Positions 7,972 to 49,136 of a DNA stretch of 64,000 bases are shown one piece after another (positions within the stretch are counted from its first letter, which is position 1; each line of letters starts with the position of its first letter). Below the pieces are notes generated by a model, which made no database searches, was not told the origin of the DNA, and was given only the letters and a program-made list of their open reading frames with translations. Source of the stretch: Paraphysomonas bandaiensis (Eukaryota; Protista; Chrysophyceae); the NCBI GenBank assembly GCA_965644295.1, contig CBFFRP010000149.1, positions 62,001 through 126,000 on the forward strand, read 5' to 3'. The translations under genes and the position numbers were made by a program.

Positions 7972-8387
7972 ATAGGTCAAGATAGATGAATATGTGTTGT
8001 GCGAAAATTTAGAATAAAATGATATACTATGCTGAAATCTCACATCGCCTAGAATCTCGAGATGTTTGATTGACGGGTGTAATGAGTAACTCTAACGTTA
8101 CATGATACATGTAACGATAATTTCTGGAATAGACGAAACTATGCTACAGTTGACTTGAAGCAGAAGTGTTTACCTGGGGTAGTTTCAGATGAAAAGTATT
8201 CTAGCTCAAGACAGTGGAGTTATGTCAGATGTGTACGTGCTACATATATGTACTTAATCGTCAATTATTGAAATTGAAATAATTGAAATTTGGACAGGAA
8301 ACACAACTACAATTGACTACAACAATACAACCCACTTCAATTAATTGAAATATTTTAAATACCATCGATTTGATATTGGCAAGGTAG

Positions 8388-8880
8388 TCGTGAATTGCTG
8401 ATTATTAGCAACCGGCGTGTAAGGGTCAGAACTAATATAGCATTTCAATAATATAACTAACTAGTGTTTATACCTCTGATATCCTACTATATTCAACGCT
8501 ACGAAAGCACCAAGGTGCAACTACTTTCGCTCTATCACTCAAAGCAAACGCAGTGGGGAAGCAGAATGTTGATATACCTGATATCTGCTGACTTCAGGAT
8601 TTTTGAGTTCTTGAGGTAAATATCCCGGATGCTTGACTTCAACAGGCAGCCCAAAACCCCGACTGTCGTTGAGGTGGGCCCGTTCCCGGATGCCTGTTTA
8701 TTCGTCAAGTCCCAAGGACGTCTACAGATGTGAGGCTTATTTGTGTCTTTTGTATCACACCAGCATTTGGCTATGAGTGGGCATAGCAATATCTGCTGAC
8801 ACTATATATAAGCGGTTCACGATAGTGTCCCGGAGAAATATATATCAGGTACTTAACCACTGAACACCACGAAAAAGTGC
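8388..8880 (-). mobile_element. SINE-like dispersed repeat, copy 1
   Basis: Reverse complement of the unit at 32085-32549 and 38370-38746: GCATCCGGG sub-repeats, GCACCTTGGTGC core, 3' end ACGCC...TTGCTAATAATCAG. Confidence 0.65.
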
Positions 8881-8989
8881 AAGGCCGTCTTTGTTGAGAG
8901 ACTTGCACTAATCGGAGTGCGTATTTTCGTTGTAATTTATATTTCCGTGTGTGTAGAATCTTATATATATATATATATATATTATATAT

Positions 8990-10800
8990 TGAATGTCTGA
9001 TTATTTAGCAATAGGCGTTGAAAGCCTGCACCAATTAGTGGCTAGAAGAATGCTAGTCATACTAGTTAGACTACTACCCGTAACTAATCAATACAAACTC
9101 TTTTATCCTACTATTTAACGCTACAGAAGCTGCTTGTGCGTCGCCGCAAGCACCAAGGTGCAACCACTTCCGTTCTTAGTGTGTGTTATGAGGCTCGCCA
9201 TGATCGTGTGTCCTGGGACTCACCGGCGCGTGTGATCTGGAGGTCTCCTCTTGGGATGAGACTCCACTCGCTATATGATAGATAGCCTTATGTACCTCAC
9301 GGGGACTGACTTATTAGCCTTATGGCAGTTAGGGGAAACAGTAATATGCCCTTCTGAGATTGGCGATCTGGTGGCCTTCCTTTAGGCATTGTTCCAAGTG
9401 GCTCGGAGGTATGTGGATGAAGGTCTTGCAAAAGGTTATGGCCTACTGTGAAGAAGCGACGAAATCGGCTCTTTTGCTGTCTTAGCCAGCGGTAGAGAAC
9501 ACATGCAAGAGGGTGTATAGCTGTACAGGGGTGGGATGTGAGGGTCATCCGGTGTGTCCAGCTACAGGGAGTCGAGAGGGAGTGTGATGGTGCAAGAGAG
9601 GCAACATCTGATTGAGGGGAGTGAGACTGCGCAACAGAACAAGAGTCACTGAGGTCGAGTACTCTGATAGCCCTATGCACGAGATGATCGTGATGATGAT
9701 GATGGTCTGGAGGAGACACTCGGACGTCCTCAGCTGCCCTTGTTAGTGTCTGTGTTGGTGCAGGGGGGTACAGGCTGAGGCATAGAGTATGTGTGTAAGG
9801 AAGATGACGGCAAGGTATCAGAGACGAAGGGAGGGGAGATAGTTTGTCCGGGGGTTTTCTAGGAGGAGGTAGAGTGTACTGTGTGTGTGTATGACACTGC
9901 AGTGGTGTTATGAGTGTGTTGGACAGAGAGAGAGAGCTGGTGATGTGTCCAGCAGTACAGGTAGACAGGTACAAGTACATGGTGATGTGTCCAACAGTAC
10001 AGGTAGACAGGTACATGGACATGGTGATGTGTCCAGCAGTACAAGTAGACAGGTACATGGACATGGTGATGTGTCCAACAGTACAGGTATACAGGTACAT
10101 GGACATGGTGATGTGTCCAACAGTACAGGTATACAGGTACATGGACATGGTGATGTGTCCAACAGCAGTAGAGGTATACACGGAATGGTATACATCCTGT
10201 AGGACACAGTAGTACAGTAGTCGAGTATACCGTATGCGGAATACAGTGTCTATCCAATGAGATGGATGGGCTGTGGGGGTGATAGGTGAACAGGGTGAGG
10301 GGGTAGCCTGCTGGGTGGATGGACCACAGACAAACCATGTTGGGTTGGGTTGAGTGGGCGGCAGAAGGCAGCCCTGTTGCACAGTTGAGAGGGATCGAGA
10401 GTATTCAGTGATTGCATAGGGGGTCCATGGGGGTCGTTTTCGTGAGCCTGCTCGCACGAGCCATGTTCTGAGAGGTTGTAGCCGTAGAAAGCGATGGGTG
10501 AGACGAAGTTGTCTGCTGAGGGGATAGCACATAGGTGCGGTCAGCGCTGCATTGGTGCAGGCACGTGGTTTAACTGAAGTAGTTGAGTAGGGTGAAGGTT
10601 GCAAGGCCAGGCAGGGGGGCTTGGAGCGTGTACAACATGGTGTGACAGGTAATTTGTCGGAAGCGTGGTGGTCAACAAAATGCAGCAGTAAGGGAGTGTA
10701 AAAGGCCCTGGGCACACTGATGTGACTCAGCCACGGTCTCAATAGAGACATTGGGCTTGGAGCTGGTTAATAGGGTGAAACTTTATGTTGGACTGTATTT
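8990..10800 (-). mobile_element. Degenerate 3' part of a non-LTR (LINE-like) retrotransposon interrupted by a minisatellite
   Basis: C-rich minus strand encoding ...MPKGRPPD (~9385-9363), then the shared tail core GTGGTTGCACCTTGGTGCTTGCGGCGACGCACAAGCAGC, terminus CGCCTATTGCTAAATAATCAGACATTCA and a (TA)n run at 8962-8989. The 5' boundary is approximate. Confidence 0.55.
9939..10180. repeat. 42-bp minisatellite, about 5.7 copies
   Basis: Unit GGTGATGTGTCCARCAGTACAGGTAKACAGGTACATGGACAT starts at 9939, 9981, 10023, 10065, 10107 and 10149. Confidence 0.95.
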
Positions 10801-10917: not shown

Positions 10918-11309
10918 GTCACAGAAGATATTGTTCTGCCCGTTCACTGATAAGTGTCGCTTGTGTACTTAGTGTACTTAGACGTCCTTGGGCCTTGACG
11001 AATAAAAACAGGCATCCGGGAATGGCCCCACCTGAAGGGCATCCGGGATATTGGGCTGCTTGCTGAATTCAAATATCTGGAAATGGGCCCACCTCAAAGG
11101 CATCCGGGGTCAAGCATCCGGGCTCTTCACCTTAATGACAAAAAGAGTAAAAATGGTTGTACCTTGGTACTTGCGGTGACGTACAAGCAGCTTTCGTAGC
11201 GCGCCAAATAGTAGGATATCAGAGTTAAGCACTAGTTAGTTAAAAAATATTTTTACGGCATTTGTTCTGACTCTTACACACCTATTGCTAATACTCAGAC
11301 ATTTACTAT
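10918..11309 (+). mobile_element. SINE-like dispersed repeat, copy 2
   Basis: AGATATTGTTCTGCCC...GGCATCCGGG repeats...ACCTTGGTACTTGCGGTGACGTACAAGCAGC...CCTATTGCTAATACTCAGACATTTACTA. Confidence 0.65.
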
Positions 11310-11942
11310 TTCCATAACAATGCTTGTATTCATATTAATGCAATGCAAATGTTATCCCATGTTTAACGTAGATATAAATTTTAAAACTTTGGTGTGTGTA
11401 CAGCTAACACATTGTAATGCAATATATTGTAATCTAGCTTCCCAAAAAAATATGGGTACTGGTGTCAAGAATAAATATTACAGCATTTAAATATATTGTT
11501 CTGGATGACGAAACGCATTAATAGGACTATGTTTGAATGAATCAAATCCGTAGAGTATCAAAATTTCCATTTGACACTATAGTAAAAGCCGTTGCTTCAA
11601 TTATGTGTGATACCAAAGAGAATATTAGGTATGTAAAAGCAACATACCAGCAAAAGATCAGTGCCAATTGATGGAACTTATACTCTAAAATTATGATGCA
11701 TCAGTAGAGCTTAAAAGCTCTACCACAGCGCATAATTTCACCTGATGAAGAGGTTGCTACACAGCTCTGTAACACTTCAGACTCTTATTCTTCATTTCAT
11801 TACAGAAAAGCTGCAACATATGACGTCTTACTGGTCAATGTATGAGCACACATGTGCACAAATATAAACAAACCACAAACTCTAAATAACTATCCAACGG
11901 CATAAGTAAGACAACACTGCGCTACTGCACTTGTATCATTCA

Positions 11943-17852: not shown

Positions 17853-18310
17853 GTTAGCAATAGGGGTCAATGGTCAATAATCAGCACCAGGTAAGTAGCT
17901 AGATGAAAACTAGTCAAGCTAAATAGATTTTTACCTGTAACTAACTAGTGCAAATTTTCATATCCTACTATGTAACGCTACGAAAGCTGTTTGTGCGTCG
18001 CCGCAAGCACCAAGGTGCGACTACTTCCGTTTTGTATGTGAGGGAGAAGCTCTCTATAGATGAGTCCTTGAAGTGCAGATGGGGTTATTCAAGGGGGCGT
18101 CCATTAGGGTAGGGGTCTGCAGGACTTTGTGGAGGCACAGGTGTCTGAATTAGTGAGTCGAGTGTTCCCAACCTGAGAGACGTGGGCGACGGGGTAGATT
18201 GGGATTCCGATGTGTCTTGAGATGGCGTGGGGCGCGAGTTGGGTCTAGGGAGAAGGAATAGCAGACGGAGGCGGTGTCGTGGCATCTCCGCTGGTGCCAT
18301 GTGTGGGGTA
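17853..18310 (-). mobile_element. 5'-truncated LINE-like 3' fragment
   Basis: ORF remnant ending PYPNGRPLE*, followed by the shared tail core (reverse complement at ~17985-18025). The 3' UTR matches 51220-51420. Confidence 0.6.
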
Positions 18311-18750: not shown

Positions 18751-21700
18751 CTAGACTCTGTTCGTTGCCTCCAATGAGTGTATTACAGTCACCAGCTGCT
18801 CTGATGAGACAGGCTTATGTATTACAGTACTTGCGCCATGTTCCAGAAAATAAGCTGTATCTGCTTTTAATACATTTCCAGTCAATCCAATTATTGGTAT
18901 AGTATATCCTTTTTCACGTAATATTTTAGCTGCTGTTGGTCCATTCATTCTAGGCATCTGGCCATCAACATGGGTTAATTTAAGCAAACATCATATAACA
19001 CAAAAATTACCTCGTAATCCATTACAATCGCATCAATAGTATCTGGGTTCTCGATAACTTTACTAATGCATTCTTCCCCATCAACTGCTTCCAGGCAAGT
19101 GTAGTTTGCTTGTCGCAACAACCGGCACACCACTTTGCGGCACATCGCAGAGTCATCAACCACAATTACATTTCTGGGAGAAAATGAAGTGTCCAATGCA
19201 CACTCAGAACGATAAGACTCTAACATCAACTTCGGAGTGGGTGGGATTGACACGCATTCTGTTCCCTGTATAGCCATTGTAACAGGTGTTGTAGGAGAAT
19301 CCCTTGGGAAAAACACTGGTAACTCGACAACAAACGAAGTGCCACACCCCTCTCCAGCAGAGCTACACGATATGGTGCCATGATGATGCTCAACAATGCT
19401 TTTAGCAATCCAAAGCCCAAGCCCAGAGCCTTGACCGGCCTGTGTACACATAATAAACACCTATCGATGCAGTAACAATGCATTGCCACACTATTATACC
19501 TGTAGTTTATTGGTTTTAAACTGCCAGCCTTCCTTGAATACATTGTCTATATTTTCTTGAGATAGTCCAACACCGGAATCTCTCACCGTTATTACAACTG
19601 AACCTTCCGCGATATGTGTACCTTGGTACTGGGACGCTACTTCGTTGACATGAGGGAGTCCATCGCGATTCCATTTCACTGAAATATATATATATGAGAC
19701 CGTATTTACAATAACGAAGTTTCATAGAAGTCTGGTTGCGCCATTAAAAATCAACAAAACCATATAGTACCTGAAACATCCACAGAACCGCCTGCTTTGG
19801 TAAACTTTAGAGCGTTAGATATTAGATTGCGAATAACTTGTCGAAGTTTACTGTCATCACCATGTATACATAGTGCCATCATTCTCGTGCTGGGTGATAC
19901 GCTTTGTAAACTCGAGCTATCATGGGCCGAGAATGATTTAGCAGAAGCACTCAAGTCACTTTCTTTACGCAATGCTTCTCTTACGGCATTATTTAACTCC
20001 TCCGACATACGGCTGTGCCTCCTAATTTCACAGTCCTTCTCGTCAGACGTTTCTGTATCGAAAGTTAAGGTTACTCCGGCCTCCACAGCTTGAATCTCAA
20101 ATAATCTTGTTGTAGTGAGCATTAGTTCCATCACATTCAGAATCTCCAAGTTCATATCAATATTACCAAACTTAATTCGATCGTATTGAAGTAAGTCATT
20201 GAGGATCAATACCGCAGCATCAGTACTGCCACCAATGTTTTCCAATAGAGCAGAAAAATCATCCAATTTCTCACGGGACACTTGAATTGGTCTATCTACA
20301 TTTGCTACGGTTCGTCGATCATCAACAGCAGTAACATTGGCTGGAAGAAGAGATTGTATCTCGCGAGCTACTAATTTAATGCCTAAACTGACTGTAGTGA
20401 GGGGAGTTCTCATTTCTGCATAGAGTATGTATCAGAGAAATTCAACATATAATATGTATTGGTACAAGGACTTACCGTGACTAATATAACGAACAAAATT
20501 CCTCTTGGCCTCATCATTCTCGAGGGTGCGCTTCGTGACTACCACGTCGTACCCCACAAACTGCACCATGCATGCTATTATCACAGCTACTGTTATCGCA
20601 GAAGTATAAATTGGACCATTCCCGTGGAACACTTTCGAGTAGGTTTCATCTCGGTATATGGTAACGGTGTATGTAAAGTCAATATTGTCGAAGAAAGAAA
20701 CAGGAAACTTCACTCTGTCTTCTTTATATTGCTTCTCTATTTTGCACCCAGATTCAATGTATACAGCTCTTCCATCTACAAATGTAAAGCAGTATTCACT
20801 CCTCTCATCATTCAAAACAACATGCAGACCCTCAGTGGATTCGAACACAGATTTGGTTAGCATTTCATCCCAATTAAACAGAGCAGATACAGAGCCCACA
20901 TGAATATATTCCTGGCCACCTAAGGTAATAATAATACTTGAAGAAGCTACATCCGGTTCTAAATCACTGAAATTTGTGATCGGTAACATCACAGGGTGAT
21001 GTATAAAACTTGCGGGACGAAATTCCACATCTTCCACGAGGTGAATTACTCGAGAGATACCCATGCATTCTTGAGCTATTACTGACATCTCTGTGCCTTC
21101 CATACTACCATCATACCTACGAATACATTCGAATATCGGATCAATAGCGTCAATGCGGTCCTGATCGGAGTATATATTAAACAGGAGAGCTCCTCTATTG
21201 ACTGTCGGATTCTTGATCTGAACGATTGGCAGAATTAAATCATTCTCCCCATAAGAATAGGGTTCAGTCACTGTGTACACTTTATTCGTAGACTCGTTTA
21301 CAGCAAATATGCCTTGTTGACGAATGCTCTCAGCAAGGTCCGGAAACCCTGAGGCGGAGTAAAAGTCACTGGTATACTTGATAAATGACGGAATCTGTCG
21401 GGGATGTATTTTCACTTCGTGATTGCATCCACGTATATCTGCCATTGTTATCAACGAGTTCACAAATCTATCATACACCTCAATATCGACAGTGCAATTC
21501 GGCCACGATGCTGTGGTTGGACAACTTGTCTTCAACAAAGACTCCATGCTATTCAACGCTGATTGCTTGGTTGCAAAGCCCTCTTTACAGTACCGCTTCA
21601 TGTGGTCGGTCAAGGACTTGAAGGACAACTTCTCAACTTTGTCTTCATCTGCTCTCATGAGTGTGTATGAGAAATACCCTCCAATCGCAGCGGTGGCAAA

Positions 21701-21796
21701 CAAACAGCACATCAGTGTCAACCTCAATAGATTTAAGCTGTGGTCGAAATTGGCTTTGCCTCCTAGAGGCCCCAAAGGAGTTACTTTCAATGACAT
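18751..21796 (-). CDS. Hybrid sensor histidine kinase (TM - CHASE-like sensor - TM - HisKA - HATPase - REC), copy A, 5 exons
   Basis: H-box FVRYISH|EMRTPL across intron 1, N-box NLISNALKFT, G1 VRDSGVGL, G2 GSGLGLWIAKSIVEHHHG, receiver VVDDS...MDYE|MPRMNG...HKPV. Confidence 0.92.
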
Positions 21797-22239
21797 ATAG
21801 TTCTCGATGAAATGATTGGAAATATATGAATGATAACTGTATATATGATTTGTTTTAATGTGTTTAATGTTATGTGTACAGGGGATGGCCTACTCCTGTT
21901 CGTGCGTTCCAGTCGCATTGGTATATTGCCTTGAGAATAATGAGGGAAATAGAGAGTCCTCGAAAATCTCATCGTTATGGTAGCAAAACAGTGATTGGGG
22001 AATGGCCTCATCTCTAATCGTCTGCATTCATTATATATGGTCACATTGTACATCCCTCCTCCCCAAACCCCTCTGCCGACTATACAGCAAATGGGACGAA
22101 AATATCCTCAAGATTTGTACAGAGTTTTCCCACAAAAAAAAACATGAATGAAAATGTGTTAGTAATTTTTATACTATTTTTCAAAAAGTGGTGTTTTTTT
22201 ACTTTCCACACCGTATTTATCCCCCAATTCGACTCTTTT

Positions 22240-22375
22240 CATGAATTTTTCGTCATTTCAAATGATTTTCCAAGACAATGGACACAATGCGGTGTGGTGT
22301 GTACCATCATGGCGTAAATAATACAGTCGAGTCCTATTCAGTATTTCGGTTTGCCTGCTTGATCTGCATGTTGAT
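22240..22375. repeat. Left copy of the 136-bp direct duplication flanking the Copia element (putative long TSD)
   Basis: CATGAATTTTTCG...CTGCATGTTGAT is identical to 27474-27609 and abuts the 5' LTR exactly. Confidence 0.9.
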
Positions 22376-22731
22376 CGTAGAGCTAAATGATGATTCGGTA
22401 TAGAAGTCTTCGAGTGATGGAAATGAAAGTCAACGTGCACATTCGTTTTTGTTACAGTGATTATGTTTTCAGTCATTGTACATGTGTGACTCTGTAGGAT
22501 ACGAGTGAGAGTGTACAGTAGAACATGATCAGCTGTAGTATTATTGTGTTGTAGGGAGACACCATAATTTCCTATCACTAACGATTTCTGTAGTATTTGC
22601 AAAGAGACTTGTCTTTTGCCTACCTGTAGTGTAGTTTGAACGGAGGACAACGGGCGAACTGGATCCGTGAGTGTTTGATTGATCTGTAGTATCAGTGTTG
22701 TATTTTCGATCCAAGTACGTATTTCTCTTCG
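22376..22731 (+). repeat. 5' LTR (356 bp, CGTAGAG...CTCTTCG)
   Basis: Identical by eye to 27118-27473. Boundaries are fixed by divergence of flanking bases: gat|CG vs gtg|CG, and CG|tga vs CG|cat. Confidence 0.95.
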
Positions 22732-22746
22732 TGATAGGAAATTATG
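22731..22746 (+). promoter_or_regulatory. Putative self-priming primer-binding site
   Basis: GTGATAGGAAATTATG is the exact reverse complement of CATAATTTCCTATCAC at 22563-22578 inside the LTR (27305-27320 in the 3' LTR). It does not begin with the TGG expected for a tRNA 3'-CCA primer. Confidence 0.8.
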
Positions 22747-25700
22747 AAGAAGTCGAGCAACGAGAAGCTCAAGAAGTTTAGGAACAAGGCGTTGGACCAG
22801 CGGTCCAGGGGCCAAGGGGCAGAGGCATTGACCCCAACGGTGCCGATTCTGAAGTATGGGACGAACACCAACCTGGCGGTATTTAAGCAGAAGCTCACAG
22901 TGGCCGCCATGATGCTATTTGGTGACCTAGCGAGGCTCGTGGAGACCGATGAGTATTATGAACCACCCAAGATAAAGATTGAGGACTACGATCTCGATAA
23001 TGACCCCCACGGTCTGAACCTGGAAGAACTTAAGGATGCGAGAAAGACACGCCAAAGGAAGATTGACCAAATGCGTGACAACCGATCAGCTTTCTATGCG
23101 TTCATGTATGACAGACTGAGCAACGAGTCCGTGGACGCGATTAAGCAATTGGAGGAATACGAAGAGATTAACTCCTCCAAGGACCCTCTACTGTTGTGGC
23201 TTGCCATCAAGCAGACTCACAAAACAGCGACGAACTCCAATGTAGGGACCATCATGCGTGCAGAAACGAGAAAGAAGTACCAAGACGTGCGTCAGGGTCC
23301 ATTTGAGAGTATCGTGGCCTATAAGGAGCGTTTCGATTTTCTTTTGGAAGCGTACAATGATATGGAGAATCCGAAGATGGAAGAAGAAGATATAGCTATG
23401 GACTTCTTCAGGGGTCTGGACGACACCAGATATGAGGAGTTTAAGACCAGTTTTATGAATGACTTAATGATGGGGACACAGAAGCCACCCAAGCACGTGA
23501 ACGAGATCTACACTAAAGCTTCGAAGTATATCACCCCGAAGAGAGGAGCGAAACCAAATGGTGGTGTTGCGTTTGTGAGCAGGAAGGACACCTCGACTAA
23601 ACAACAGCGTCGCACAGGTGATGCTGATGACAAGACGAAGTCGAATGGGACCGACGAGTCGAAAGGAAGCGTGCGAAAGCATAGAGGCCCTATTGTATGT
23701 TGGGGTTGTGGAAAGACTGGACACAAGCTAAACCAGTGTCAAGAGAACGTCGAACCAGAGGAGAAACAATGCTCAGTGACTATGCAGAATGCGTTCACAT
23801 CGGGAGGAGAGCGTTTCGAATGGTACGAAGTTCTACTAGACAATCAGGCGGATGTGTCCGTTGTGCACCCGTGGCTACTGACAGATGTGAGACCTGCCGA
23901 TCGTAAGTGTAAAGTAGCTGGCTTGTCTGGTCACGCAGTAGAACTGCCCAATGTGGGAGAGCTGCCACAATTTTTCACATGTAAAACTGCCGACAACCTA
24001 CGAGTCAGTGTGTTGTGCCAAGCTGATGTCGAAGATCTGTACCCTATTGTGTATGAGCCAGGAGTGTCATACACGGTGTGTCTACCTAATAGAGAGCTAG
24101 TGTTCTACAGACGGAACAAAATGTATATAGCTGATATGAGGGATTGGGTGACACAAGGCAGGGTAAATATTACGACAACAAGAATGAAAGAACAAGAATA
24201 CACTAAAAGCGAAGTGGTGAGAGCTCGGAGGGCGCTGGAACTTGTACGGAACGCGGGTTTCGACTCAGAGCAGGGAGCCATGAACCTTGTGAGCGACGGA
24301 AATGTAACAGACGTGCCGTTGACGGCGCAAGACGTGAGGCGAGCTTTCGACATATACGGGAAGCCTTATGAAGCGGTTAGGGGGAAGACCACTAAACGTA
24401 AGAGCGGTAGGCAGTACGTGGACGTGGGAATCAAAGCAGATCAGCCCAAGCCGCAACGTTTGTATACCGATATATTCAGTGTGAGAAAACAACCGTTCCT
24501 GATAACACTGTCCGAGCCACTGGGGTTGACTCTTGTATCTCCGGTAGCTAGTGAGAAGACTGATGATCTAGGTCTAGCTTTTCAGGAGCAAGTATCTCTA
24601 CTAAGAAGTCATGGTTTCGCACCAACTGTAGCCTATCTGGATCCGCAGCCTGGTTTCCAACCCCTCAGAGGACAGATTACAGGGGTGGAAGTAGATGTGT
24701 GTGGAGCAGGGGATCACATGGACAAGGTAGATCTCAAGATCCGGAGACTGAAAGAGACTATTAGATCTGTGCAGGCAGGATTACCCTGGTCACTGCCTGA
24801 TAACATGGTCAGAGATCTGGTGAAGTACTCAAACAGTCGCCTAAATATCAGAAGGCCGTCTACAGGCACATCCATAGTAGCGCCACGAGTAGCGTTCACT
24901 GGGAGAAAGCCTAACTACCGAAAGGAACTAGAGCTAGCATTTGGTGACTACGTGGAGTGCTACAACCCAAAGGTGCGAAGCAACGATGCCGAGCAAAGTC
25001 ACACTGAGCCGTGTATTGCATTGTACCCTACTGGAAATGCCAACGGTAGCTGGTTTTTTATGAATGCGAAGACACACAAGCGAGTGAGAAGGACACACTG
25101 GGTGAAAATGAAGACAACACAGCTCATAATTGATGCGATGAATCAGATGGCGAAGATGGGTGATACGACTAGGAAGAGTCAGATTCCGAACCCACTCCTA
25201 CAGTCGATAGAAGCAGAAGAGCAGCAGAAAGGCGAAGACATGAAGGAGAGTACGCCAGAGGACGTTAAACAGACTCCAGTTGCAGAAACAATAGTGGAAG
25301 ATGTATCTACTACTGTGGTTGATGTAGAGCATAGTGGAGACCCACTAGGAGATGACGGTGATAATGAAGGTGAAGTGCCAGAACTTGTTGATGAGGAGCT
25401 GGATGACGATGTCCCAACTATGAAGTCCGGCAGCAGCATTACAAGCAGTGACGAGACAGGCGTTGAGAACGACAGGTCGCCGGATGCGAAGTCGAAACCA
25501 GTAGAGTACAGGGCCTTTCACACGAGTGCGATGAAGGGACTGCGTGAGTATGGTCCACCGGCATATAACGCTATCATATCGGAACTGAAACAACTTTTGC
25601 ATGACAAGAAGGCTATGCGTCCAGTACACCGCAAGGACTTATCGGCAACACAGTTGAAGAGAGCTATTCGATCTCTGATGTTTCTCAAGACTAAGTATGA

Positions 25701-27132
25701 TGGCTTAGGGCGCTTCGAAAAGATAAAAGCAAGACTGGTAGCTAATGGCGCACAACAAGATAGGAAGGTGTACGTAGACACATCGTCACCAACAGCAGCG
25801 ATGCAATCGATTATGATGTGTCTGGCGATAGCTGCTAAAGAGGGACGTCACATAGGTACCATGGATATAGGAGGCGCTTACCTGAACGCCGAGATGTCTG
25901 GCGAAGAAGTCATAATGGAATTAGAGCCAATGTTAACGACGATATTGAAGAAAGTGGCTCCTGAAGTATCACCGTATGTTGATGAGACTGGTAAACTACT
26001 AGTGCGGCTGGACAAGGCGCTATACGGGTGCATCCAGAGTGCGAAACTCTGGTACAACACGCTTACAGGATATTTGAGAAGTTTGGGATTCGAGCACAAC
26101 GCGGTCGACCCATGTGTAATGAACAAAGTAGCTGGCGGGCGAAAGTGTACAGTGGTGATATTCGTGGATGACATACTGGTCATGTCAAGCCATAAGGGCG
26201 ACTACCTAGAGTTGCTTAAGAAACTGAAAGAGAAGTTTGGGGATGTAAAGCACGACGATGGGAAAGATCTGTCATATCTCGGAATGCACATTAGAGCAGA
26301 GGGAGATAAGGTGACAGTGTCCATGAGATCGTACATCGAGAATTTTCTACGAGAACACGGAGTGACAGGAACTGCTACATCACCTGCTACAGCTACTCTA
26401 TTTAAGAACACCATGGACAAACCCACTAGTAAGAGTGATAGAAGGAAGTTTCACAAGATGGTGGCTCAGTTGCTGTACCTGGCCAAAAGGGTTAGACCAG
26501 ACATACTGCTTGCAGTCGCTTACCTTAGCACGAGAGTCAAGAATCCGACGCATGCTGACATGGAGAAACTTGGCAGGGTGACCCGCTACCTGAACGCGAC
26601 TAAGGGGCAGGACTTGTTGCTGTGCATTGGAAAGAATCTTACCGTTACTGGATACGTCGATGCGGCATTTGGGACTCATGACGATGGAAAGGGTCATTCG
26701 GGTCTGGTCGTAAAGGTGGGGGATGCAACAGTACTCTGCAAATCGTCGAAACAGCGCATTGTGACACGTGACTCGACGGAATCAGAGTTGGTAGGTCTAT
26801 CAGATATGTTAATGATGATTGTGCAATGTGCAGAATTCATAAAGGAACAAGGATACAGTATTGACGCACCTAGAGTGTTGCAAGACAATACCTCGACTCT
26901 ATCTCTTGTAACGAAAGGCGGAGGCAAATATCGTACAAAATACCTGCGTGTGAGGCGTGAATTCATCAAGGAAAGGGCAGATGAAGGAAGCATTCAATTG
27001 GAGTACTTACCCACAAAGATGATGTTGGCTGATGCATTGACGAAGCCCCTCCAAGGTACTCTGTACAAGTTTATGACATGTGGTATCGTGGGAAACAATA
27101 CACATGCCACAGGGGTGCGTAGAGCTAAATGA
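22744..27132 (+). CDS. Copia gag-pol polyprotein (1462 aa)
   Basis: Zn knuckle CWGCGKTGHKLNQC; protease VLLDNQADVSV; integrase LYTDIF / YLDPQ / HMDKVDLKIRRLKE; RT KARLVANG, MDIGGAYLNA, KALYGCIQSAKLWY, IFVDDIL; RNase H YVDAAF, STESELV, QDNTS, ADALTKPL. No stops or frameshifts. Confidence 0.97.
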   Translation: MKKSSNEKLKKFRNKALDQRSRGQGAEALTPTVPILKYGTNTNLAVFKQKLTVAAMMLFGDLARLVETDEYYEPPKIKIEDYDLDNDPHGLNLEELKDARKTRQRKIDQMRDNRSAFYAFMYDRLSNESVDAIKQLEEYEEINSSKDPLLLWLAIKQTHKTATNSNVGTIMRAETRKKYQDVRQGPFESIVAYKERFDFLLEAYNDMENPKMEEEDIAMDFFRGLDDTRYEEFKTSFMNDLMMGTQKPPKHVNEIYTKASKYITPKRGAKPNGGVAFVSRKDTSTKQQRRTGDADDKTKSNGTDESKGSVRKHRGPIVCWGCGKTGHKLNQCQENVEPEEKQCSVTMQNAFTSGGERFEWYEVLLDNQADVSVVHPWLLTDVRPADRKCKVAGLSGHAVELPNVGELPQFFTCKTADNLRVSVLCQADVEDLYPIVYEPGVSYTVCLPNRELVFYRRNKMYIADMRDWVTQGRVNITTTRMKEQEYTKSEVVRARRALELVRNAGFDSEQGAMNLVSDGNVTDVPLTAQDVRRAFDIYGKPYEAVRGKTTKRKSGRQYVDVGIKADQPKPQRLYTDIFSVRKQPFLITLSEPLGLTLVSPVASEKTDDLGLAFQEQVSLLRSHGFAPTVAYLDPQPGFQPLRGQITGVEVDVCGAGDHMDKVDLKIRRLKETIRSVQAGLPWSLPDNMVRDLVKYSNSRLNIRRPSTGTSIVAPRVAFTGRKPNYRKELELAFGDYVECYNPKVRSNDAEQSHTEPCIALYPTGNANGSWFFMNAKTHKRVRRTHWVKMKTTQLIIDAMNQMAKMGDTTRKSQIPNPLLQSIEAEEQQKGEDMKESTPEDVKQTPVAETIVEDVSTTVVDVEHSGDPLGDDGDNEGEVPELVDEELDDDVPTMKSGSSITSSDETGVENDRSPDAKSKPVEYRAFHTSAMKGLREYGPPAYNAIISELKQLLHDKKAMRPVHRKDLSATQLKRAIRSLMFLKTKYDGLGRFEKIKARLVANGAQQDRKVYVDTSSPTAAMQSIMMCLAIAAKEGRHIGTMDIGGAYLNAEMSGEEVIMELEPMLTTILKKVAPEVSPYVDETGKLLVRLDKALYGCIQSAKLWYNTLTGYLRSLGFEHNAVDPCVMNKVAGGRKCTVVIFVDDILVMSSHKGDYLELLKKLKEKFGDVKHDDGKDLSYLGMHIRAEGDKVTVSMRSYIENFLREHGVTGTATSPATATLFKNTMDKPTSKSDRRKFHKMVAQLLYLAKRVRPDILLAVAYLSTRVKNPTHADMEKLGRVTRYLNATKGQDLLLCIGKNLTVTGYVDAAFGTHDDGKGHSGLVVKVGDATVLCKSSKQRIVTRDSTESELVGLSDMLMMIVQCAEFIKEQGYSIDAPRVLQDNTSTLSLVTKGGGKYRTKYLRVRREFIKERADEGSIQLEYLPTKMMLADALTKPLQGTLYKFMTCGIVGNNTHATGVRRAK

Positions 27133-27473
27133 TGATTCGGTATAGAAGTCTTCGAGTGATGGAAATGAAAGTCAACGTGCACATTCGTTTTTGTTACAGT
27201 GATTATGTTTTCAGTCATTGTACATGTGTGACTCTGTAGGATACGAGTGAGAGTGTACAGTAGAACATGATCAGCTGTAGTATTATTGTGTTGTAGGGAG
27301 ACACCATAATTTCCTATCACTAACGATTTCTGTAGTATTTGCAAAGAGACTTGTCTTTTGCCTACCTGTAGTGTAGTTTGAACGGAGGACAACGGGCGAA
27401 CTGGATCCGTGAGTGTTTGATTGATCTGTAGTATCAGTGTTGTATTTTCGATCCAAGTACGTATTTCTCTTCG
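27118..27473 (+). repeat. 3' LTR, preceded by a short purine-rich tract AGGGGTG (27111-27117)
   Basis: Identical to the 5' LTR; the polyprotein stop codon (27130-27132) lies inside it. Confidence 0.95.
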
Positions 27474-27609
27474 CATGAATTTTTCGTCATTTCAAATGAT
27501 TTTCCAAGACAATGGACACAATGCGGTGTGGTGTGTACCATCATGGCGTAAATAATACAGTCGAGTCCTATTCAGTATTTCGGTTTGCCTGCTTGATCTG
27601 CATGTTGAT
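27474..27609. repeat. Right copy of the 136-bp direct duplication (putative long TSD)
   Basis: Identical to 22240-22375 and abuts the 3' LTR exactly. Confidence 0.9.
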
Positions 27610-27943
27610 GTTATGTGGAAGTATGTCGCAGTTTCAGTTCTTCTCATTTAAAGGGGCAGCACTGAGAATCTCTGCGCTATAGCACATAAATATATAGTCC
27701 GTAGTGGTGATACTAGTGGGGCAGGTTGTTCATTACAGTAAAACCTTTTACCTCATTCTCTATAAACGACTGCGTATCGTGATCTGAATCAGTGATTGAA
27801 TTCTGTTTAAAGATCAACAAGATACACACTCGTCATACATACCCACACATCACAGTAACATATCTATACATTCAAATGAACCGATAGAAAGTGATCATTG
27901 ATTATAAAAATCACAACAGAAGTCTTCAAATACTAAAGAGACA

Positions 27944-30900
27944 ATGACGAAAGTAACTCCTTTGGGGCCTCTGGGAGGCAAAGCCAATTTCGACCACAGC
28001 TTAAATCTATTGAGGTTGACACTGATGTGCTGTTTGTTTGCCACCGCTGCGGTTGGAGGGTATTTCTCATACACACTCATGAGAGCAGATGAAGACAAAG
28101 TTGAGAAGTTGTCCTTCAAGTCCTTGACCGACCATATGAAACGGTATTGCAAAGAGGGCTTTGCAGAGAAGCTATCAGCGTTGAATAGCATACAGTCTTT
28201 GTTGAAGACAAGTTGTCCAACCACAGCATCGTGGCCGAATTGCACTGTCGATATTGAGGAGTATGATAGATTTGTGAACTCGTTGATAACAATGGCAGAT
28301 ATACGTGGATGCAATCACGAAGTGAAAATACATCCCCGACAGATTCCGTCATTTATCAAGTATACCAGTGACTTTTACTCCGCCTCAGGGTTTCCGGACC
28401 TTGCTGAGAGCATTCGTCAACAAGGCATATTTGCTGTAAACCAGTCTACGAATAAAGTGTACACAGTGACTGAACCCTATTCTTATGGGGAGAATGATTT
28501 AATTCTGCCAATCGTTCAGATCAACAATCCGTCAGTCAATAGAGGAGCTCTCCTGTTTAATATATACTCCGATCAGGACCGCATTGACGCTATTGATCCG
28601 ATATTCGAATGTATTCGTAGGTATGATGGTAGTATGGAAGGCACAGAGATGTCAGTAATAGCCCAAGAATGCACGGGTATGTCTCGAGTAATTCACCTCG
28701 TGGAAGATGTGGAATTTCGTCCCGCTATTTTTTTACTTCACCCTGTGATGTTACCAATCACAAATTTCAGTGATTTAGAACCTGATGTAGCTTCTTCAAG
28801 TATTATTATTACCTTAGGTGACCAGGAATATATTCATGTGGGCTCTATAACTGCTCTGTTTAATTGGGATGAAATGCTAACCAAATCTGTGTTCGAATCC
28901 ACTGAGGGTCTGCATGTTGTTTTGAATGATGAGAGGAATGAATACTGCTTTACATTTGTAGATGGAAGAGCTGTATACGCTGAATCTGGGTGCAAAATAG
29001 AGAAGCAATATAAAGAAGACAGAGTGAAGTTTCCTGTTTCTTTCCTCGACAATATTGACTTTACATACACCGTTACCATATACCGAGATGAAACCTACTC
29101 GAAAGTGTTCCACGGGAATGGTCCAATTTATACTTCTGCGATAACAGTAGCTGTGATAATAGCATGCATGGTGCAGTTTGTGGGGTACGACGTGGTAGTC
29201 ACGAAGCGCACCCTCGAGAATGATGAGGCCAAGAGGAATTTTGTTCGTTATATTAGTCACGGTAAGTCCTTGTACCAATACATATTATATGTTGAATTTC
29301 TCTGATACATACTCTATGCAGAAATGAGAACTCCCCTCACTACAGTCAGTTTAGGCATTAAATTAGTAGCTCGCGAGATACAATCTCTTCTTCCAGGCAA
29401 TGCTACAGCTATTGATGATCGACGAACCGTAGCAAATGTGGATAGACCAATTCAAGTGTCCCGTGATAAATTGGATGATTTTTCTGCTCTATTGGAAAAC
29501 ATTGGTGGCAGTACTGATGCTGCGGTATTGATCCTCAATGACTTACTTCAATACGATCGAATTAAGTTTGGCAATATTGATATGAACTTCGAGATTCTGA
29601 ATGTGATGGAACTAATGCTCACTACAACAAGATTATTTGAGATTCAAGCTGTGGAGGCCGGAGTATCCTTAACTTTCGATACAGAAACGTCTGACGAGAA
29701 GGACTGTGAAATTAGGAGGCACAGCAATATGTCGGAAGAGTTAAATAATGCCGTAAGAGAAGCAATGCGTAAAGAAAGTGACTTGAGTGCTTCTGCTAAA
29801 TCATTCTCGGCCCATGATAGCTCGAGTTTACAAAGCGTATCACCCAGCACGAGAATGATGGCACTATGTATACATGGTGATGACAGTAAACTTCGACAAG
29901 TTATTCGCAATCTAATATCTAACGCTCTAAAGTTTACCAAAGCAGGCGGTTTTGTGGATGTTTCAGGTACTATATGGTTTTGTTGATTTTTAATGGCGCA
30001 ACCAGACTTCTATGAAACTTCGTTATTGTAAATACGGTCTCATATATATATATATTTCAGTGAAATGGAATCGCGATGGACTCCCTCATGTCAACGAAGT
30101 AGTGTCCCAGTACCAAGGTACACATATCGCGGAAGGTTCAGTTGTAATAACGGTGAGAGATTCCGGTGTTGGACTATCTCAAGAAAATATAGACAATGTA
30201 TTCAAGGAAGGCTGGCAGTTTAAAACCAATAAACTACAGGTATAATAGTGTGGCAATGCATTGTTACTGCATCGATAGGTGTTTATTATGTGTACACAGG
30301 CCGGTCAAGGCTCTGGGCTAGGGCTTTGGATTGCTAAAAGCATTGTTGAGCATCATCATGGCACCATATCGTGTAGCTCTGCTGGAGAGGGGTGTGGCAC
30401 TTCGTTTGTTGTCGAGTTACCAGTGTTTGTTCCTGTTGTTTCTTCTACTCCTTCTACTAAAAAGTTAGAATACTTTCCTTTTACCGCACCTAATCGTTCT
30501 GAACGGTGTCTGCAATCTACATCGCCACTTTTGAAAACAGTTCTTGTGGTTGATGACTCCGCTATGTGCCGCAAAGTGGTCTGTCGACTGTTGCAAGGAG
30601 TTGGTGTTACATGCCTGGAAGCAGTTGATGGGGAAGAATGCATTAGTAAAGTTATCGAGAACTCAGATACTATTGATGCGATCGTAATGGATTACGAGGT
30701 AATTTTTATGTTATATGATGTTTGTTTAAGTTAACCTATGTGTTGATGGCCAGATGCCTAGAATGAATGGACCAACAGCAGCTAAAATATTACGTGAAAA
30801 AGGATATACTATACCAATAATTGGATTGACTGGAAATGTATTAAAAGCAGATACAGCTTATTTTTTGGAACATGGCGCAAGTGCAGTTATGCATAAGCCT

Positions 30901-30960
30901 GTTTCCCTTGAACAATTAATGTCTGTTATTGGATCCGCAACTGCAGAACTTAACGTTTAG
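27944..30960 (+). CDS. Hybrid sensor histidine kinase, copy B; exons 27944-29261, 29322-29966, 30061-30239, 30300-30698, 30754-30960
   Basis: Same H, N, G1, G2 and REC motifs as copy A. GT-AG introns join the ORFs in frame. Inverted paralogue of 18751-21796. Confidence 0.92.
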
Positions 30961-31598
30961 TGGTCTCAAGAGTAATGCATGGAATCGGGTGCTGTAGTGG
31001 TCTTGAGTTTTTTTTATGAATATATGCATGTTTCATTTTTGTATGTAAACATTAAGTTTATTGTATTGTTCACACAATAGAAAAAACAGGTGTATAGTAT
31101 CATGTGATATTCGTTAATGTACTTCAGTTTTGCCATTATAGTAGGGAATGCTTTCCTCGTTACATTCGCAATCCTCCTATGCATCTCTTCGAGTTACGTA
31201 ATGCACATTAACCCTTTTCAATAGTAGAATACTTAATGCAAGTATGTATCGTAACAGATGCCCTTAGTTTCACTATTTAAATTGAGTACACCACAAGTCA
31301 ATGACTTCTTGATTCTTGAAGAATAAAAAATCTGGCGAATGCATTACGGTTATCTGAAAAATGACATTATCTGTCAATATTGTTGAGTTCTGAGGTATGC
31401 TGTGATATATATTGTAGTATTGTACAATTGAAGTAAGTTCATAGTGTGAAATTGGTGAATAAACTCATAGTTATAACGGGTAAATATATAGTTACAAAGG
31501 AAGTAAATTCAGTTAAAGATGTGTGACAAAGTAAAATTTAGGAGTGACTGGTGATATACATGTTTCTGAGAACAGATGCTCAGTAAATGTTGCATGAA

Positions 31599-31966
31599 TA
31601 GTGAATGTCTTATTATCAGCAATAGGCGTGTAAAAGTCAGAACTAATGTAGCAAAACAAGGAAACTAAAACTAGTACCTAACTTTGATATCCTACTATTT
31701 TTTTATCACTACGAAAGCTGCTTGTGCGTCACCGCAAGCACCAAGGTGAAACCACTTTCGCTCTATCATTCAAAGCATAGTGAGCAAGCAGAATGTTGAT
31801 ATATACCTGACATCTGCTAACTTCAGGACTTTAGAGTCTTTAAGGTAAACAGCCCGGATGCTTGACTTCAACAGAGGCAACCCAATACCCCGGATGCCTG
31901 TTTATTCGTTTATTCGTCAAGGCTCAAAGACGTTTACACAAGCAATTGGTTATGAGTGGGCAGAAC
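31599..31966 (-). mobile_element. SINE-like dispersed repeat, copy 3
   Basis: TAGTGAATGTCTTATTATCAGCAATAGGCGTGTAAAAGTCAGAAC...GCTGCTTGTGCGTCACCGCAAGCACCAAGGTG...CCCGGATGC; inverted relative to copy 4. Confidence 0.65.
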
Positions 31967-32084
31967 GTACACGTAAACTTTAACCTGGCTTTGTTGCGAA
32001 AAATGTACTTTAAATAAGAATTGTAACTACGAATTACTCTGAACACGTTAGATGTAACACACTCGTCAAAGTCGGACTCGGACC

Positions 32085-32549
32085 TCTTCGTGGTGTTCTG
32101 GGGGATAAGTACTGTTCTCCAGCAAACTAACATAAGCCGCGTATATATAGTCAGCAGATATTGTTCTGCCCACTTATAGGAAAATGCTTGTGTAGCACAA
32201 GAGTCACTACTATAGGTGTCACTTGTGTAGATGTCTTTGGGCCTTGGCGAATAAACAGGCATTCGGGAATGGGCCCACCTCAAGGGCATCCGGGGTATTG
32301 GGCTGCCAGCTGAAGTCAAGCATCCGGGCTGGTTCACCTTAAAGTCTCTAAAGTCCTGAAGTTAGCAGATATCACATACTGCTAGCTCACTGCATTTGCT
32401 TTGAGTGATAGTGTTTGCACCTTGGTGCTTCAGGTGACGCAGAAGCAGCTTTCGTAGCATTAGATAGTAGGATATCAGAGTTAAGCATTGAATAGTTAAA
32501 TTAGTTCTGACTCTTACACGCCTATTAGAAATAATAAGGCATTTACTAC
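32085..32549 (+). mobile_element. SINE-like dispersed repeat, copy 4
   Basis: Same unit on the plus strand, ending ACACGCCTATTAGAAATAATAAGGCATTTACTA. Confidence 0.65.
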
Positions 32550-32984
32550 TGTGTGAGTCAGTTTCTGTTAAAGAGAGTAACACACTGAGAGCTGGAGGAG
32601 GTGGACTATTCAAATCTGTAATGGTCTAAAGTGGCAGTAGAAATTGTTAATATACACTGGCTGTGCCCCTGTTATACTTAGTAGTTACAATTTACCTCAA
32701 AGTAAACCCCAACGTAAACCTAGTAGTTGTAGTGTAGACACTATAATACAATTAATACAACTCTGTTATCCTATTGTATATTATCTAAATATTATAATAA
32801 GGTATATTTTGAGGTAAGCAAGTATTTCCATAGAATTTCATTCTTACCCTCAAAGTAAACCCCCAGAAGATCGATTGTAAAATACTATACAATATAAAAA
32901 CAATGATCGACGTTTATTAAACATCGAATGATGAAACAAGGTGATGTAAGTAGACTGATGACAGAGATATATTATATTTACTGT

Positions 32985-35560: not shown

Positions 35561-35766
35561 ATTGAGATGTTAATACCACCAGCTCAATATATTAGAGTGG
35601 GGAAATGGATCAAAGCATGAGCCATATTCAACTGATCAGTTCATACATATAGCTACTGCTGTATGCGTATGTGTGTCAGTTAATCAGTTTAATCAGTGCC
35701 AGAAAATGTATATAATTTATTATGATATTATATATAACAAATTAAGAGCTCTGAAATAAGTCGATA

Positions 35767-35838
35767 TCCCGATTAGTCCAGTGGTTAGGATATAGCCCTC
35801 TCAAGGCTGAGACCCGGGTTCAATTCCCGGATCGGGAA
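35767..35838 (+). tRNA. tRNA-Glu (CTC)
   Basis: 72 nt; acceptor stem TCCCGAT/ATCGGGA; D arm TAGTCCAGTGGTTAGGATA; anticodon loop CT-CTC-AA; T arm CCGGGTTCAATTCCCGG; downstream T7 terminator. Confidence 0.96.
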
Positions 35839-36210
35839 ACCTTTTTTGATGTCGTTTTTGATAAAATCTAGATATTTTTTGCACCACCAAAAAATCATAT
35901 TTCACCCTGAAAAAATGCTTTATACTGATATGAATGATAGAATTAATCCATCTTTTCCACCGTTAAAAGTTGTTTTCATGAAATCCAGAGTCACCCTTTT
36001 GAAGTTTCTCTGGATTTCCCTATGACACACAACCCCTTGTATATAAAGGACAACTCGACATACGTACGAAGGATAAGTTTTAAGGTTCAAGATCAGAAAA
36101 AGGTAAAAACCGAGAAAAATGGCATCCCAACTGGAGATGTTCTTAACAAGTTAATTTAGTAGATTGTTCATTTATATATACCTTTTTTACCGACTTATCA
36201 TAAGTCCTCA

Positions 36211-36282
36211 TCCCGATTAGTCCAGTGGTTAGGATATGGCCCTTTCAAGGCTGAGACCCGGGTTCAATTCCCGGATCGGGAA
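36211..36282 (+). tRNA. tRNA-Glu (TTC)
   Basis: Same body as 35767-35838 with anticodon loop CT-TTC-AA; downstream T7 terminator. Confidence 0.96.
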
Positions 36283-36539
36283 AACTTTTTTTGTAAATTT
36301 ACTTCTGTTTTTTTTTGCTGTTGTGGAGTAACGTTGCGCCTATGTATACACAGCAGTATATGTATATGTATATTATGTATGGTGTTTTACGTACAGCAGA
36401 GTGTCTATGGAACAATATGTACATTACACAAGCTCATCTAACCAGCACAACATGTCACTAAGTTTTAATGTAATTTTCTAATTCTTCAAATGCACTAGTA
36501 ACAGGCCTTGATATTGTATATTAATCTGACGTGTGGGGT

Positions 36540-38369: not shown

Positions 38370-38746
38370 TAAATACTTCTCCGGGAAACTAAAGTTAGCC
38401 GCATATATCATAGTCAGCAGATAACGTTCTGCCCACTCATAGCCAAATGCTTTCGTAGCACAAGAGTCACTAATATAAGTGTCACTTGTGTACGTCTCTG
38501 GGCCTTGACGATTAAACAGGCATCCGGGAATTGGGCTGCCAGCTGAAGTCAAGCATCCGGGCTGTTCACCTTAAGGACAGAAAGCGAATGTGGTTTCACC
38601 TTGGTGCTTGCGGTGACGCACAAGAAGTAGCTTTTGTAGAGCAAAAAGTAGTAGGATATGAGAGTTAAGCACTAGTTAGTTAAATTGTGTTGCTACATTA
38701 GTTCTGACTCTTACACGCCTATTGCTAATAATCAGGCATTCACTAT
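38370..38746 (+). mobile_element. SINE-like dispersed repeat, copy 5
   Basis: TAGTCAGCAGATAACGTTCTGCCC...CACCTTGGTGCTTGCGGTGACGCACAAG...CGCCTATTGCTAATAATCAGGCATTCACTA. Confidence 0.65.
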
Positions 38747-39049
38747 TACATGTGATGTGGAATACAAAAGCGCTAGTCGCACAATATAATAGCTACTTCA
38801 TTTTCTGGGAACACAAATTCAAATATTGTTTATCCATTGCCATTTTGGAAACTGACGTGCCGTAAGACAAGTAGAGTAACTACTAAGTACACATTTAATA
38901 AACTTGCGAAAACATTCTAGTTGTTCATTTCCATTCTTATTAGTTGTATTTCGACTAGGCGATACAACATTACAGTACTATTAAATTTTAGTTTATTCAA
39001 AATATATGACAAGTTAAATTAAGACTGTATGACCTGCTTATACCGATTT

Positions 39050-47275: not shown

Positions 47276-48199
47276 TTAAATACTATCTTTTTTGAAATCG
47301 GTGTGTGTCAAATTATATTTATATTGAAGGTAGTCGCCATATAACACGGGGTCATATGACGCGGGATTCTCGTCTGAAATAAATTGTGGCATACATTCCA
47401 CGAGTGCACATCTGTTGGGTTCATAAAAGAATGCCATGCTGTACCTATCTCTTTCAGACGAATCGATGACTACTCTGTGAACTGTAGACCTGAATTTATT
47501 GTTCGTCATACGTTGAAGACAGTCACCAAGGTTGACAATAAGGTAATTAGCATCAGGAGGTGGTACAGCACTCCATTTCCCATCGTAGTATATTTCCAGA
47601 CCAGGGACCCCATTGGTGGCTAGAATCGTAAGAAAACCGTAATCAGAGTGTGGCCCAGTCCCGAACACTCCTTCAGATGGACACGATGGCTGTCTGCCGT
47701 ATTTGATTAGACGTAGAATAGCAGTTGGGTTCGTACAATGAGATTCCAGGACTTCTACAGGTAGATCCAAGGCAGCAGTAAGTAGCTGCATGAGCTTGGT
47801 AGAAAGTGATGTACATTCCTCATGATATCGTAGCATTATCGATTTCCAATCCCCAAGTGAAGGATGAGTAGGCCACACATTCTTGTGCTCTGGATTTACA
47901 ACATCCGCATCCTCATTTGTGATGTAATAACCTTCCTTCGTATCACCACAAGACTGCGAATCAGGGCATACAGTCTCATCTTGAAACGACGTATACCCCA
48001 AATTTGCTTCATTGCACAAACTAAGACGTTTCACTGGGTCAGGGAGACTGAAAAATGCCTCAGATGCAGCTAGAGCACTTTGAACTTCTGTTAAACCGTG
48101 ATTACATAAATAGAAAAATCCAACGCTCTCACAAGCATCTTTCAATTGGCTTACTGCATTCAGGTCATCGCGTAAATCAACAACTGGTAAAGTTGTCAT
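47276..48199 (-). CDS. 2-oxoglutarate/Fe(II) dioxygenase, isopenicillin N synthase-like (DIOX_N + 2OG-FeII_Oxy)
   Basis: LPVVDL...ACESVGFFYLCNHG; HSDYGFLTIL; NLGDCLQRMTN; STVHRV; RYSMAFF. Confidence 0.93.
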   Translation of the reverse strand: MTTLPVVDLRDDLNAVSQLKDACESVGFFYLCNHGLTEVQSALAASEAFFSLPDPVKRLSLCNEANLGYTSFQDETVCPDSQSCGDTKEGYYITNEDADVVNPEHKNVWPTHPSLGDWKSIMLRYHEECTSLSTKLMQLLTAALDLPVEVLESHCTNPTAILRLIKYGRQPSCPSEGVFGTGPHSDYGFLTILATNGVPGLEIYYDGKWSAVPPPDANYLIVNLGDCLQRMTNNKFRSTVHRVVIDSSERDRYSMAFFYEPNRCALVECMPQFISDENPASYDPVLYGDYLQYKYNLTHTDFKKDSI

Positions 48200-48248
48200 T
48201 GCAGAAGGGTAGATACTCTCCACTCACTGCATACCTACCATGACATAG

Positions 48249-48942: not shown

Positions 48943-49136
48943 ATTCAGTTTTTCTTGTTGGAACATTATTTGTGTCCGTTAAAAAATTGTGTCAATGTCG
49001 GTTTTATTTCAGTTATTGTTGTACATATACAGATGTATGTATGTAAATCTCAGTTCTCATTTTAACGACGTTTTATATTCACCACATTATTGTTGATCAA
49101 GGAAACCGTCGTATATATTAGCCTTCACCTTACAGG

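Follow-up and report, generated by a model that had tools for sequence, protein, structure and literature searches.

A 136-bp target duplication flanking a young Ty1/copia-type retrotransposon of Paraphysomonas bandaiensis, probably produced by one uncoupled integration

In normal integration, a single intasome inserts both ends of the linear complementary DNA (cDNA) of a long terminal repeat (LTR) element into opposite target strands at points 5 bp from each other. Failure to coordinate the joining of the ends has been recognised as giving rise to duplications and deletions where retroviruses integrate (PMC2857682, PMC5041404); in such aberrant integration, one end is joined normally, truncation of the other is frequent but not invariable, and the host DNA acquires duplications of hundreds to thousands of bp (PMC5041404). 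Long target-site duplications (TSDs) of 111-450 bp also flank some LTRs and proviruses of HERV-K (HML-2), with the pre-integration alleles verified by polymerase chain reaction (PCR) at two loci (PMC5488345, citing Mamedov et al. 2004). The CoDi copia groups of diatoms, in turn, include families without TG/CA at the LTR ends, have TSDs of ~5 bp (e.g. ACAAG) and display recombination between copies (PMC2806351). Here we describe a Ty1/copia-type retrotransposon of the chrysophyte Paraphysomonas bandaiensis that is bounded by a 136-bp direct duplication, termed A, in place of a 5-bp TSD. It lies in a 64,000-nt stretch of the GenBank assembly GCA_965644295.1 (contig CBFFRP010000149.1, positions 62,001 to 126,000 of the forward strand), hereafter the window, to which all coordinates refer unless another locus is named.

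A 136-bp duplication flush with both LTR ends

The element and its two flanking repeats follow one another in the order A-LTR-ORF-LTR-A, where ORF stands for open reading frame:

22240..22375, plus strand: left A, 136 bp of duplicated target DNA, equal to 27474-27609 and abutting the start of the 5' LTR
22376..22731, plus strand: 5' LTR, 356 bp, termini CGTAGAG...CTCTTCG, 100% the same as 27118-27473
22744..27132, plus strand: single intact ORF of 1462 residues, gag-protease-integrase-reverse transcriptase-RNase H, from the ORF list and its translation
27118..27473, plus strand: 3' LTR, 356 bp, complete to the terminal CG, its end the same as in a second copy of the family (L001, see below)
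27474..27609, plus strand: right A, directly adjoining the end of the 3' LTR

Repeat finding and direct reading of the window agree that the two A copies are the same at 136 of 136 positions and that zero bases separate either copy from the adjoining LTR end. An earlier note on this locus, prepared from the sequence letters, had described this arrangement and the lack of a short TSD, and its description proved exact to the base. Comparison of 5 nt on each side revealed no short TSD at the level of the LTRs (TTGAT before the 5' LTR vs CATGA after the 3' LTR), nor outside the A copies (CTTTT on the left vs GTTAT on the right). A perfect repeat of 136 bp in register with both LTR ends cannot have arisen by chance. 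With 0 differences over the 356 bp of the LTRs and 0 over the 136 bp of A, both repeat pairs are equally young. Repeat tools extend the duplication to 143 nt at 99% identity, because the 7 nt directly 5' of the left A (CTCTTTT, 22233-22239) match the last 7 nt of the LTR (CTCTTCG, 27467-27473) at 5 positions, a likeness that is only marginally unusual (estimated p ~0.03 for a single comparison).

Further copies of A were found neither in the window nor in any of the fetched loci. The second copy of the family, L001, which comes from another assembly and has an ORF 99-100% identical to that of the window, shares the LTR end ...CTCTTCG and then continues into unrelated DNA; it thus provides independent confirmation of the 3' boundary of the LTR and, because its 3' flank differs, identifies A as host DNA that is not carried by the element. 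The proposal of the earlier note that A is pre-existing target DNA is borne out by this difference and by the uniqueness of A, and A does not travel with every copy. One argument offered in its favour has to be abandoned: the imperfect inverted repeat that overlaps the left A (15 nt, at 22089 and 22244) does exist, but 121 of 500 shuffles of A matched the left flank equally well or better, and it lends no support to A as the target. That A could be part of the element, either as split terminal repeats of the DIRS/Ngaro kind or as an extended LTR, is an idea for which only the A-LTR...LTR-A symmetry speaks; it is refuted by the absence of A at the 3' end of L001, and we accord it practically no probability, given that reverse transcription could not produce the A-LTR...LTR-A order and that, as regards DIRS/Ngaro, the element has a DDE integrase in place of a tyrosine recombinase, and its reverse transcriptase belongs to RVT_2. 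A target that already contained A in tandem before the insertion is excluded, since a 5-bp TSD would break the flush register.

The structure probably arose when a linear Ty1/copia-type cDNA was integrated once, aberrantly and with its ends uncoupled, into 136 bp of single-copy DNA in a divergent intergenic region, and the uncoupled integration of two ends that the earlier note had put forward is the best available explanation of those considered. In such an event, the right cDNA end would have been joined to the top strand between 22239 and 22240 (pre-insertion coordinates), and the left cDNA end to the bottom strand at a point 136 bp to the right, the stagger having its usual 5' polarity. 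Filling of the two 136-nt single-stranded gaps by host polymerases, a step that would need unwinding or strand displacement, would then generate the two copies of A. Both LTR ends are complete, which therefore calls for either two separate integrase half-reactions or one integrase joint combined with one loss-free host end joining; we infer both the enzyme behind each joint and the single-event origin. Support is provided by an independent second long duplication, that of L003, together with a member of the same family as L003, L089, that has a normal 5-bp TSD.

Target duplications of related insertions

For a comparison of TSDs, we considered full-length relatives with both flanks from long contigs. 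Exact 5-bp TSDs adjoin complete LTR ends in all six ordinary insertions of related families:

L002: TSD TTGGT
L004: TSD TTGAA
L006: TSD AGAAG
L089: TSD GATGT
L090: TSD GGATG
L091: TSD ACTTT

The long duplication is therefore an exception and not the rule of the lineage. The metagenome scan yielded 80 relatives, nearly all on ~5-kb contigs that end inside the LTRs. Four flanked relatives (L027, L035, L081 and L085) are distant and diverged, with unreliable TSD calls, and were left out of the tally, as was L005, in which the sequence after the apparent 3' LTR and a Tc1/mariner insertion is the 5' region of another copy. Scans of viral_contigs for the LTR-end pattern recovered no further copies of the window's own family.

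The second long duplication surrounds L003, an element from an independent long-read assembly, with a protein 43% identical to that of the window and identical LTRs of 491 bp. Its flanking direct duplication spans 361 bp with 2 mismatches, and the duplicated flank is absent from L089. Judged against L089, the 3' LTR of L003 stops 5 nt short, with the terminal CAACG absent, and meets the duplicated segment at a 2-nt microhomology. On the other side, 7 nt lie between the left copy of the duplication and the intact 5' LTR end (2483-2489 of L003) and recur 24 bp past the right copy (8402-8432); therefore, the duplication measures ~392 bp, its left copy has a 24-bp deletion and the 5' junction is precise. 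The same recurrence led us to reject the interpretation of these 7 nt as filler at the left junction. Error-prone repair synthesis or errors of the 8x long-read assembly may account for the 24-bp difference and the 2 mismatches. The combination of an intact 5' end, a shortened 3' end and a duplication of hundreds of bp matches the literature pattern of a one-ended integration finished by host repair (PMC5041404).

The earlier note had also drawn attention to the near-nucleosomal distance between the two joints and suggested measuring the flanking repeats of relatives for a cluster around it. The measured repeats, six of 5 bp and one of ~390 bp, have no common long spacing, and with ~390 bp as the only other case of a long duplication, the significance attached to this distance is not supported.

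L003 bears as well on an integrase-independent capture, whereby non-homologous end joining would insert a full-length linear cDNA at a break whose 136-nt 5' overhangs, produced by two nicks on opposite strands, had been filled in beforehand. The shortened end of L003 and its microhomology attest to host end joining acting on such cDNAs, and in the window the target just 5' of A resembles the LTR 3' end at 5 of 7 bases; a report by Moreau et al., cited in PMC2857682, counts on the same side. However, these LTR-like bases sit 2 nt from the joint and are of marginal significance, and both ends of the window copy retain the terminal CG, nothing having been lost or filled in and no microhomology having been used at the junctions, which would be unusual for two independent end joinings. 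We consider such a capture unlikely.

Tandem arrays of the form element-LTR-element were detected in L005 (7386-9412), L007 (1-10347), L048, L069 and L088 (1-13985). The source of L007 is an NCBI genome assembly. L088 consists of three tandem units of the window's own family with a period of 4742 bp and no flanks, and this array may represent an assembly cycle. A Tc1/mariner-type element, which follows the target TA with CAGT... and contains a DDE_3 gene (8073-9098), splits the shared LTR of L005.

The chief alternative is unequal homologous crossover, which the earlier note did not consider and which would generate exactly the structure at the window locus. Two independent normal insertions of the same family, one at each boundary of A, equally oriented and situated on homologues or sister chromatids, could recombine into a product that consists of the left flank, A, the element, A and the right flank; this product would hold two precise integrase junctions, and its apparent TSD would equal the distance from one site to the other. 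The intact, flush LTR ends are those expected of two normal junctions; recombination seems common in the lineage, judging from the tandem arrays; similar pseudo-TSD models have been discussed for HERV-K (PMC5488345), and recombination mediated by transposable elements is known in diatoms (PMC2806351). Yet the crossover needs two insertions of a low-copy family within 136 bp of each other, followed by an exchange, and still 0 differences in 356 + 136 bp. The 64-kb window contains a single copy of the family, there is no evidence of an insertion hotspot, and the shortened 3' LTR end of L003 cannot be accounted for in this way. Accordingly, an origin by crossover appears rather unlikely.

An assembly artefact, namely a second A or an element placement misjoined at a heterozygous insertion, would likewise be expected to yield perfect identity in both repeat pairs. 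We nevertheless regard it as very unlikely, because no overlap logic would put A on both sides flush with complete LTR ends, and the same architecture is present in the independent long-read assembly that contains L003.

Several observations weigh against uncoupled integration as the source of the window insertion. An empty allele was found neither by exact look-ups of both flanking gene products, which gave nothing, nor by a homologue search, which returned only proteins of 43-45% identity, so that we infer the single pre-insertion A. The LTR ends are intact and free of filler, and no junction scar separates uncoupled integration from unequal crossover. Finally, the 5-bp norm rests on relatives at 40-46% protein identity; no ordinary same-family insertion was recovered together with its two flanks, L001 having one flank and L088 none.

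The retrotransposon and its integrase

By the type of its reverse transcriptase, its domain order (integrase upstream of reverse transcriptase) and its two LTRs, the window element is a member of Ty1/copia. Two usual features of this group are missing: the 4-6 bp TSD, in the window insertion but not in the six ordinary insertions of relatives, and the TG...CA termini, throughout the lineage; the latter are a usual rather than strictly defining feature of Ty1/copia (Pseudoviridae). Specifically, the LTR termini are CG...CG in the window copy, L002, L004 and L089-L091, and CA...AG in L006. Within the polyprotein and the adjoining non-coding sequence, the following features were recognised:

22732..22743, plus strand: spacer TGATAGGAAATT, 12 nt from the LTR to the ATG, at the expected position of the primer-binding site, a putative function suggested by position only
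23695..23742, plus strand: CCHC zinc knuckle of gag, residues 318-333, with a weak match to Pfam zf-CCHC; C319, C322, H327 and C332 are invariant
24151..25179, plus strand: integrase, approximately residues 470-812, recognised by fold match; D576 and D633 are invariant and E671 is near-invariant
25660..26379, plus strand: reverse transcriptase, residues 973-1212, Pfam RVT_2 (E 1.7e-30, 106.8 bits vs a cutoff of 31.6)
26641..27048, plus strand: probable RNase H region, approximately residues 1300-1435, assigned by position after the reverse transcriptase and conserved acidic residues
27107..27117, plus strand: polypurine-tract-like motif CCACAGGGGTG directly before the 3' LTR, read from the sequence

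Direct reading of the 12 nt after the 5' LTR, with no systematic comparison to tRNAs, did not disclose a TGG-type tRNA complement. The motif CCACAGGGGTG also lies directly 5' of the 3' LTR in L003, L005, L006 and L089, with the variant CCACAGGGTCG at the same position in L002 and L090-L091, and TCACAGGGTCG in L004. Profile searches of the PDB matched gag to retroviral nucleocapsids and to the capsids of Ty3 and copia. In the expected protease region, the only invariant Asp belongs to LLD-N-Q-A (residues 364-370, ~23830-23850), not to the canonical D-T/S-G, with the variants D-Y-S, D-N-C, D-S-Q and D-P-Q among homologues; either the protease is atypical or its placement in the polyprotein is wrong. 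For the RNase H region, in which D1306 is invariant and E1346, D1381 and D1430 are nearly invariant, no family match was obtained. Proteins at least 90% identical to the polyprotein include a Paraphysomonas transcript (MMETSP1103, taxid 36769) with ~99% identity over the aligned blocks, and the element family is therefore transcribed, in a protist kept in culture.

The integrase could not be recognised by sequence, with no match in Pfam at E-values up to 10 or in PDB profile searches; likewise, although the polyprotein has 1269 homologues, no Pfam rve match was present among the ~120 that were listed. Nevertheless, the D,D,E triad (D576, D633, E671) is conserved in the alignment of 23 homologues, and an AlphaFold2 model of residues 470-880 (pLDDT 80, pTM 0.75) retrieved the integrases of PFV, MVV, RSV and HIV as the top Foldseek matches (E ~1e-10, probability 1.0). 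An HHCC zinc-finger signature was not seen among the conserved columns of the integrase. Thus, the integrase is very divergent in sequence but, as modelled, of the ordinary retroviral type in its fold.

These results bear on whether long duplications could be a property of the lineage, with a highly divergent integrase whose intasome geometry would as a rule produce target duplications of long or varying length. The failure of Pfam rve and PDB sequence searches to detect the integrase would fit such a property, as would the presence of long duplications (136 bp and ~390 bp) in two of the eight full-length insertions examined. Against it stand the exact 5-bp TSDs in all six ordinary insertions, the standard retroviral fold predicted for the integrase, and the two long duplications themselves, which are unequal in length and of which one has a shortened end. 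We judge such a property highly improbable, and the unusual intasome geometry contemplated in the earlier note is not supported, the integrase having a retroviral fold with the D,D,E triad and the ordinary insertions of relatives having 5-bp TSDs. A fairly unlikely variant, to which the two-in-eight frequency also speaks, is that the lineage with CG...CG ends and a divergent integrase has an intrinsically high rate of uncoupled end joining. If so, transposition would regularly leave behind long target duplications that could potentially be reversed, and a duplicated promoter segment might aid the survival of insertions in compact intergenic regions.

Genomic context and comparison with known systems

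The retrotransposon sits in the spacer between the arms of an inverted duplication, each carrying one of two head-to-head paralogues, with the arms ending a few bases upstream of the respective ATGs:

18782..21788, minus strand: left arm of the ~3-kb inverted duplication (98%), carrying one of the two head-to-head paralogues
21797..22239, no strand: unique left flank from the ATG of the left paralogue (21796, minus strand) up to A, with CTCTTTT at its right end
27610..27943, no strand: unique right flank from A up to the ATG of the right paralogue (27944), by direct reading
27949..30929, plus strand: right arm of the ~3-kb inverted duplication, from repeat finding

Removal of the element and one A would leave 913 bp from one ATG to the other. 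The paralogue ORFs occupy 20432-21796 and 19751-20413 on the minus strand and 27944-29305 and 29324-29986 on the plus strand, and the 220-residue ORF has a weak HATPase_c match.

The remainder of the window carries compact eukaryotic genes, among which several repeats were observed; neither here nor in the fetched loci did any sequence look human. A ~900-bp tandem array at 48100-49065, with an 8-bp period (12-bp steps) and strong GC skew, is the source of spurious ORFs in both strands. Tandem repeats of 42 bp (14 codons) at 9880-10207 lie in a 484-residue ORF (9297-10751, minus strand) with no Pfam match. Two tRNA-Glu genes (anticodons CTC and TTC; 35756-35847 and 36200-36291) form a 444-bp tandem pair with surroundings that are 93% identical. 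A dispersed repeat family, 77-93% identical and in both orientations (8384-9183, 11006-11310, 17873-18040, 31597-32550, 38410-38750 and 51241-51402), is unrelated to the copia element and probably represents another transposable element or its terminal repeats.

The window insertion is best explained as a rare integration accident of an already known kind, and it is a very recent, cleanly preserved natural case in which an LTR retrotransposon outside the vertebrate retroviruses made a long target duplication. Taken with the scarred L003, it suggests that retroviral-type integrases in nature are generally prone to failure by uncoupled integration, beyond the effects of drugs or mutations. Annotation pipelines for transposable elements that require a 4-6 bp TSD will wrongly class such copies as 'recombinant, no TSD'. 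Homologous recombination between the 136-bp direct repeats could also remove the element precisely and leave what would look like an empty site. In the present arrangement, each neighbouring gene keeps an unbroken A on its own side of the 913-bp divergent promoter region, and this may explain the persistence of the insertion.

As in HERV-K, an LTR element lies between target duplications of ~100-450 bp instead of 5-6 bp, as a rare exception in a family with short TSDs. HERV-K is, however, a vertebrate betaretrovirus-like group with pre-integration alleles that were verified by PCR for two loci, whereas the window element is a Ty1/copia retrotransposon of a stramenopile protist in which both LTRs and the ORF are intact. 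With respect to aberrant HIV-1 and ASLV integration, L003 fits the described pattern exactly and the window copy fits the subset in which the second end is not truncated; those events were provoked in cultured cells by integrase inhibitors, integrase mutants or a defective DNA end, whereas the event in the window was spontaneous and was inherited in a natural genome. The element resembles the CoDi groups, as described in the literature, in its copia-type reverse transcriptase, a gag with CCHC, a single polyprotein ORF and a length of ~5 kb, but the nearest named source of its family is a transcriptome of Paraphysomonas, a chrysophyte and not a diatom.

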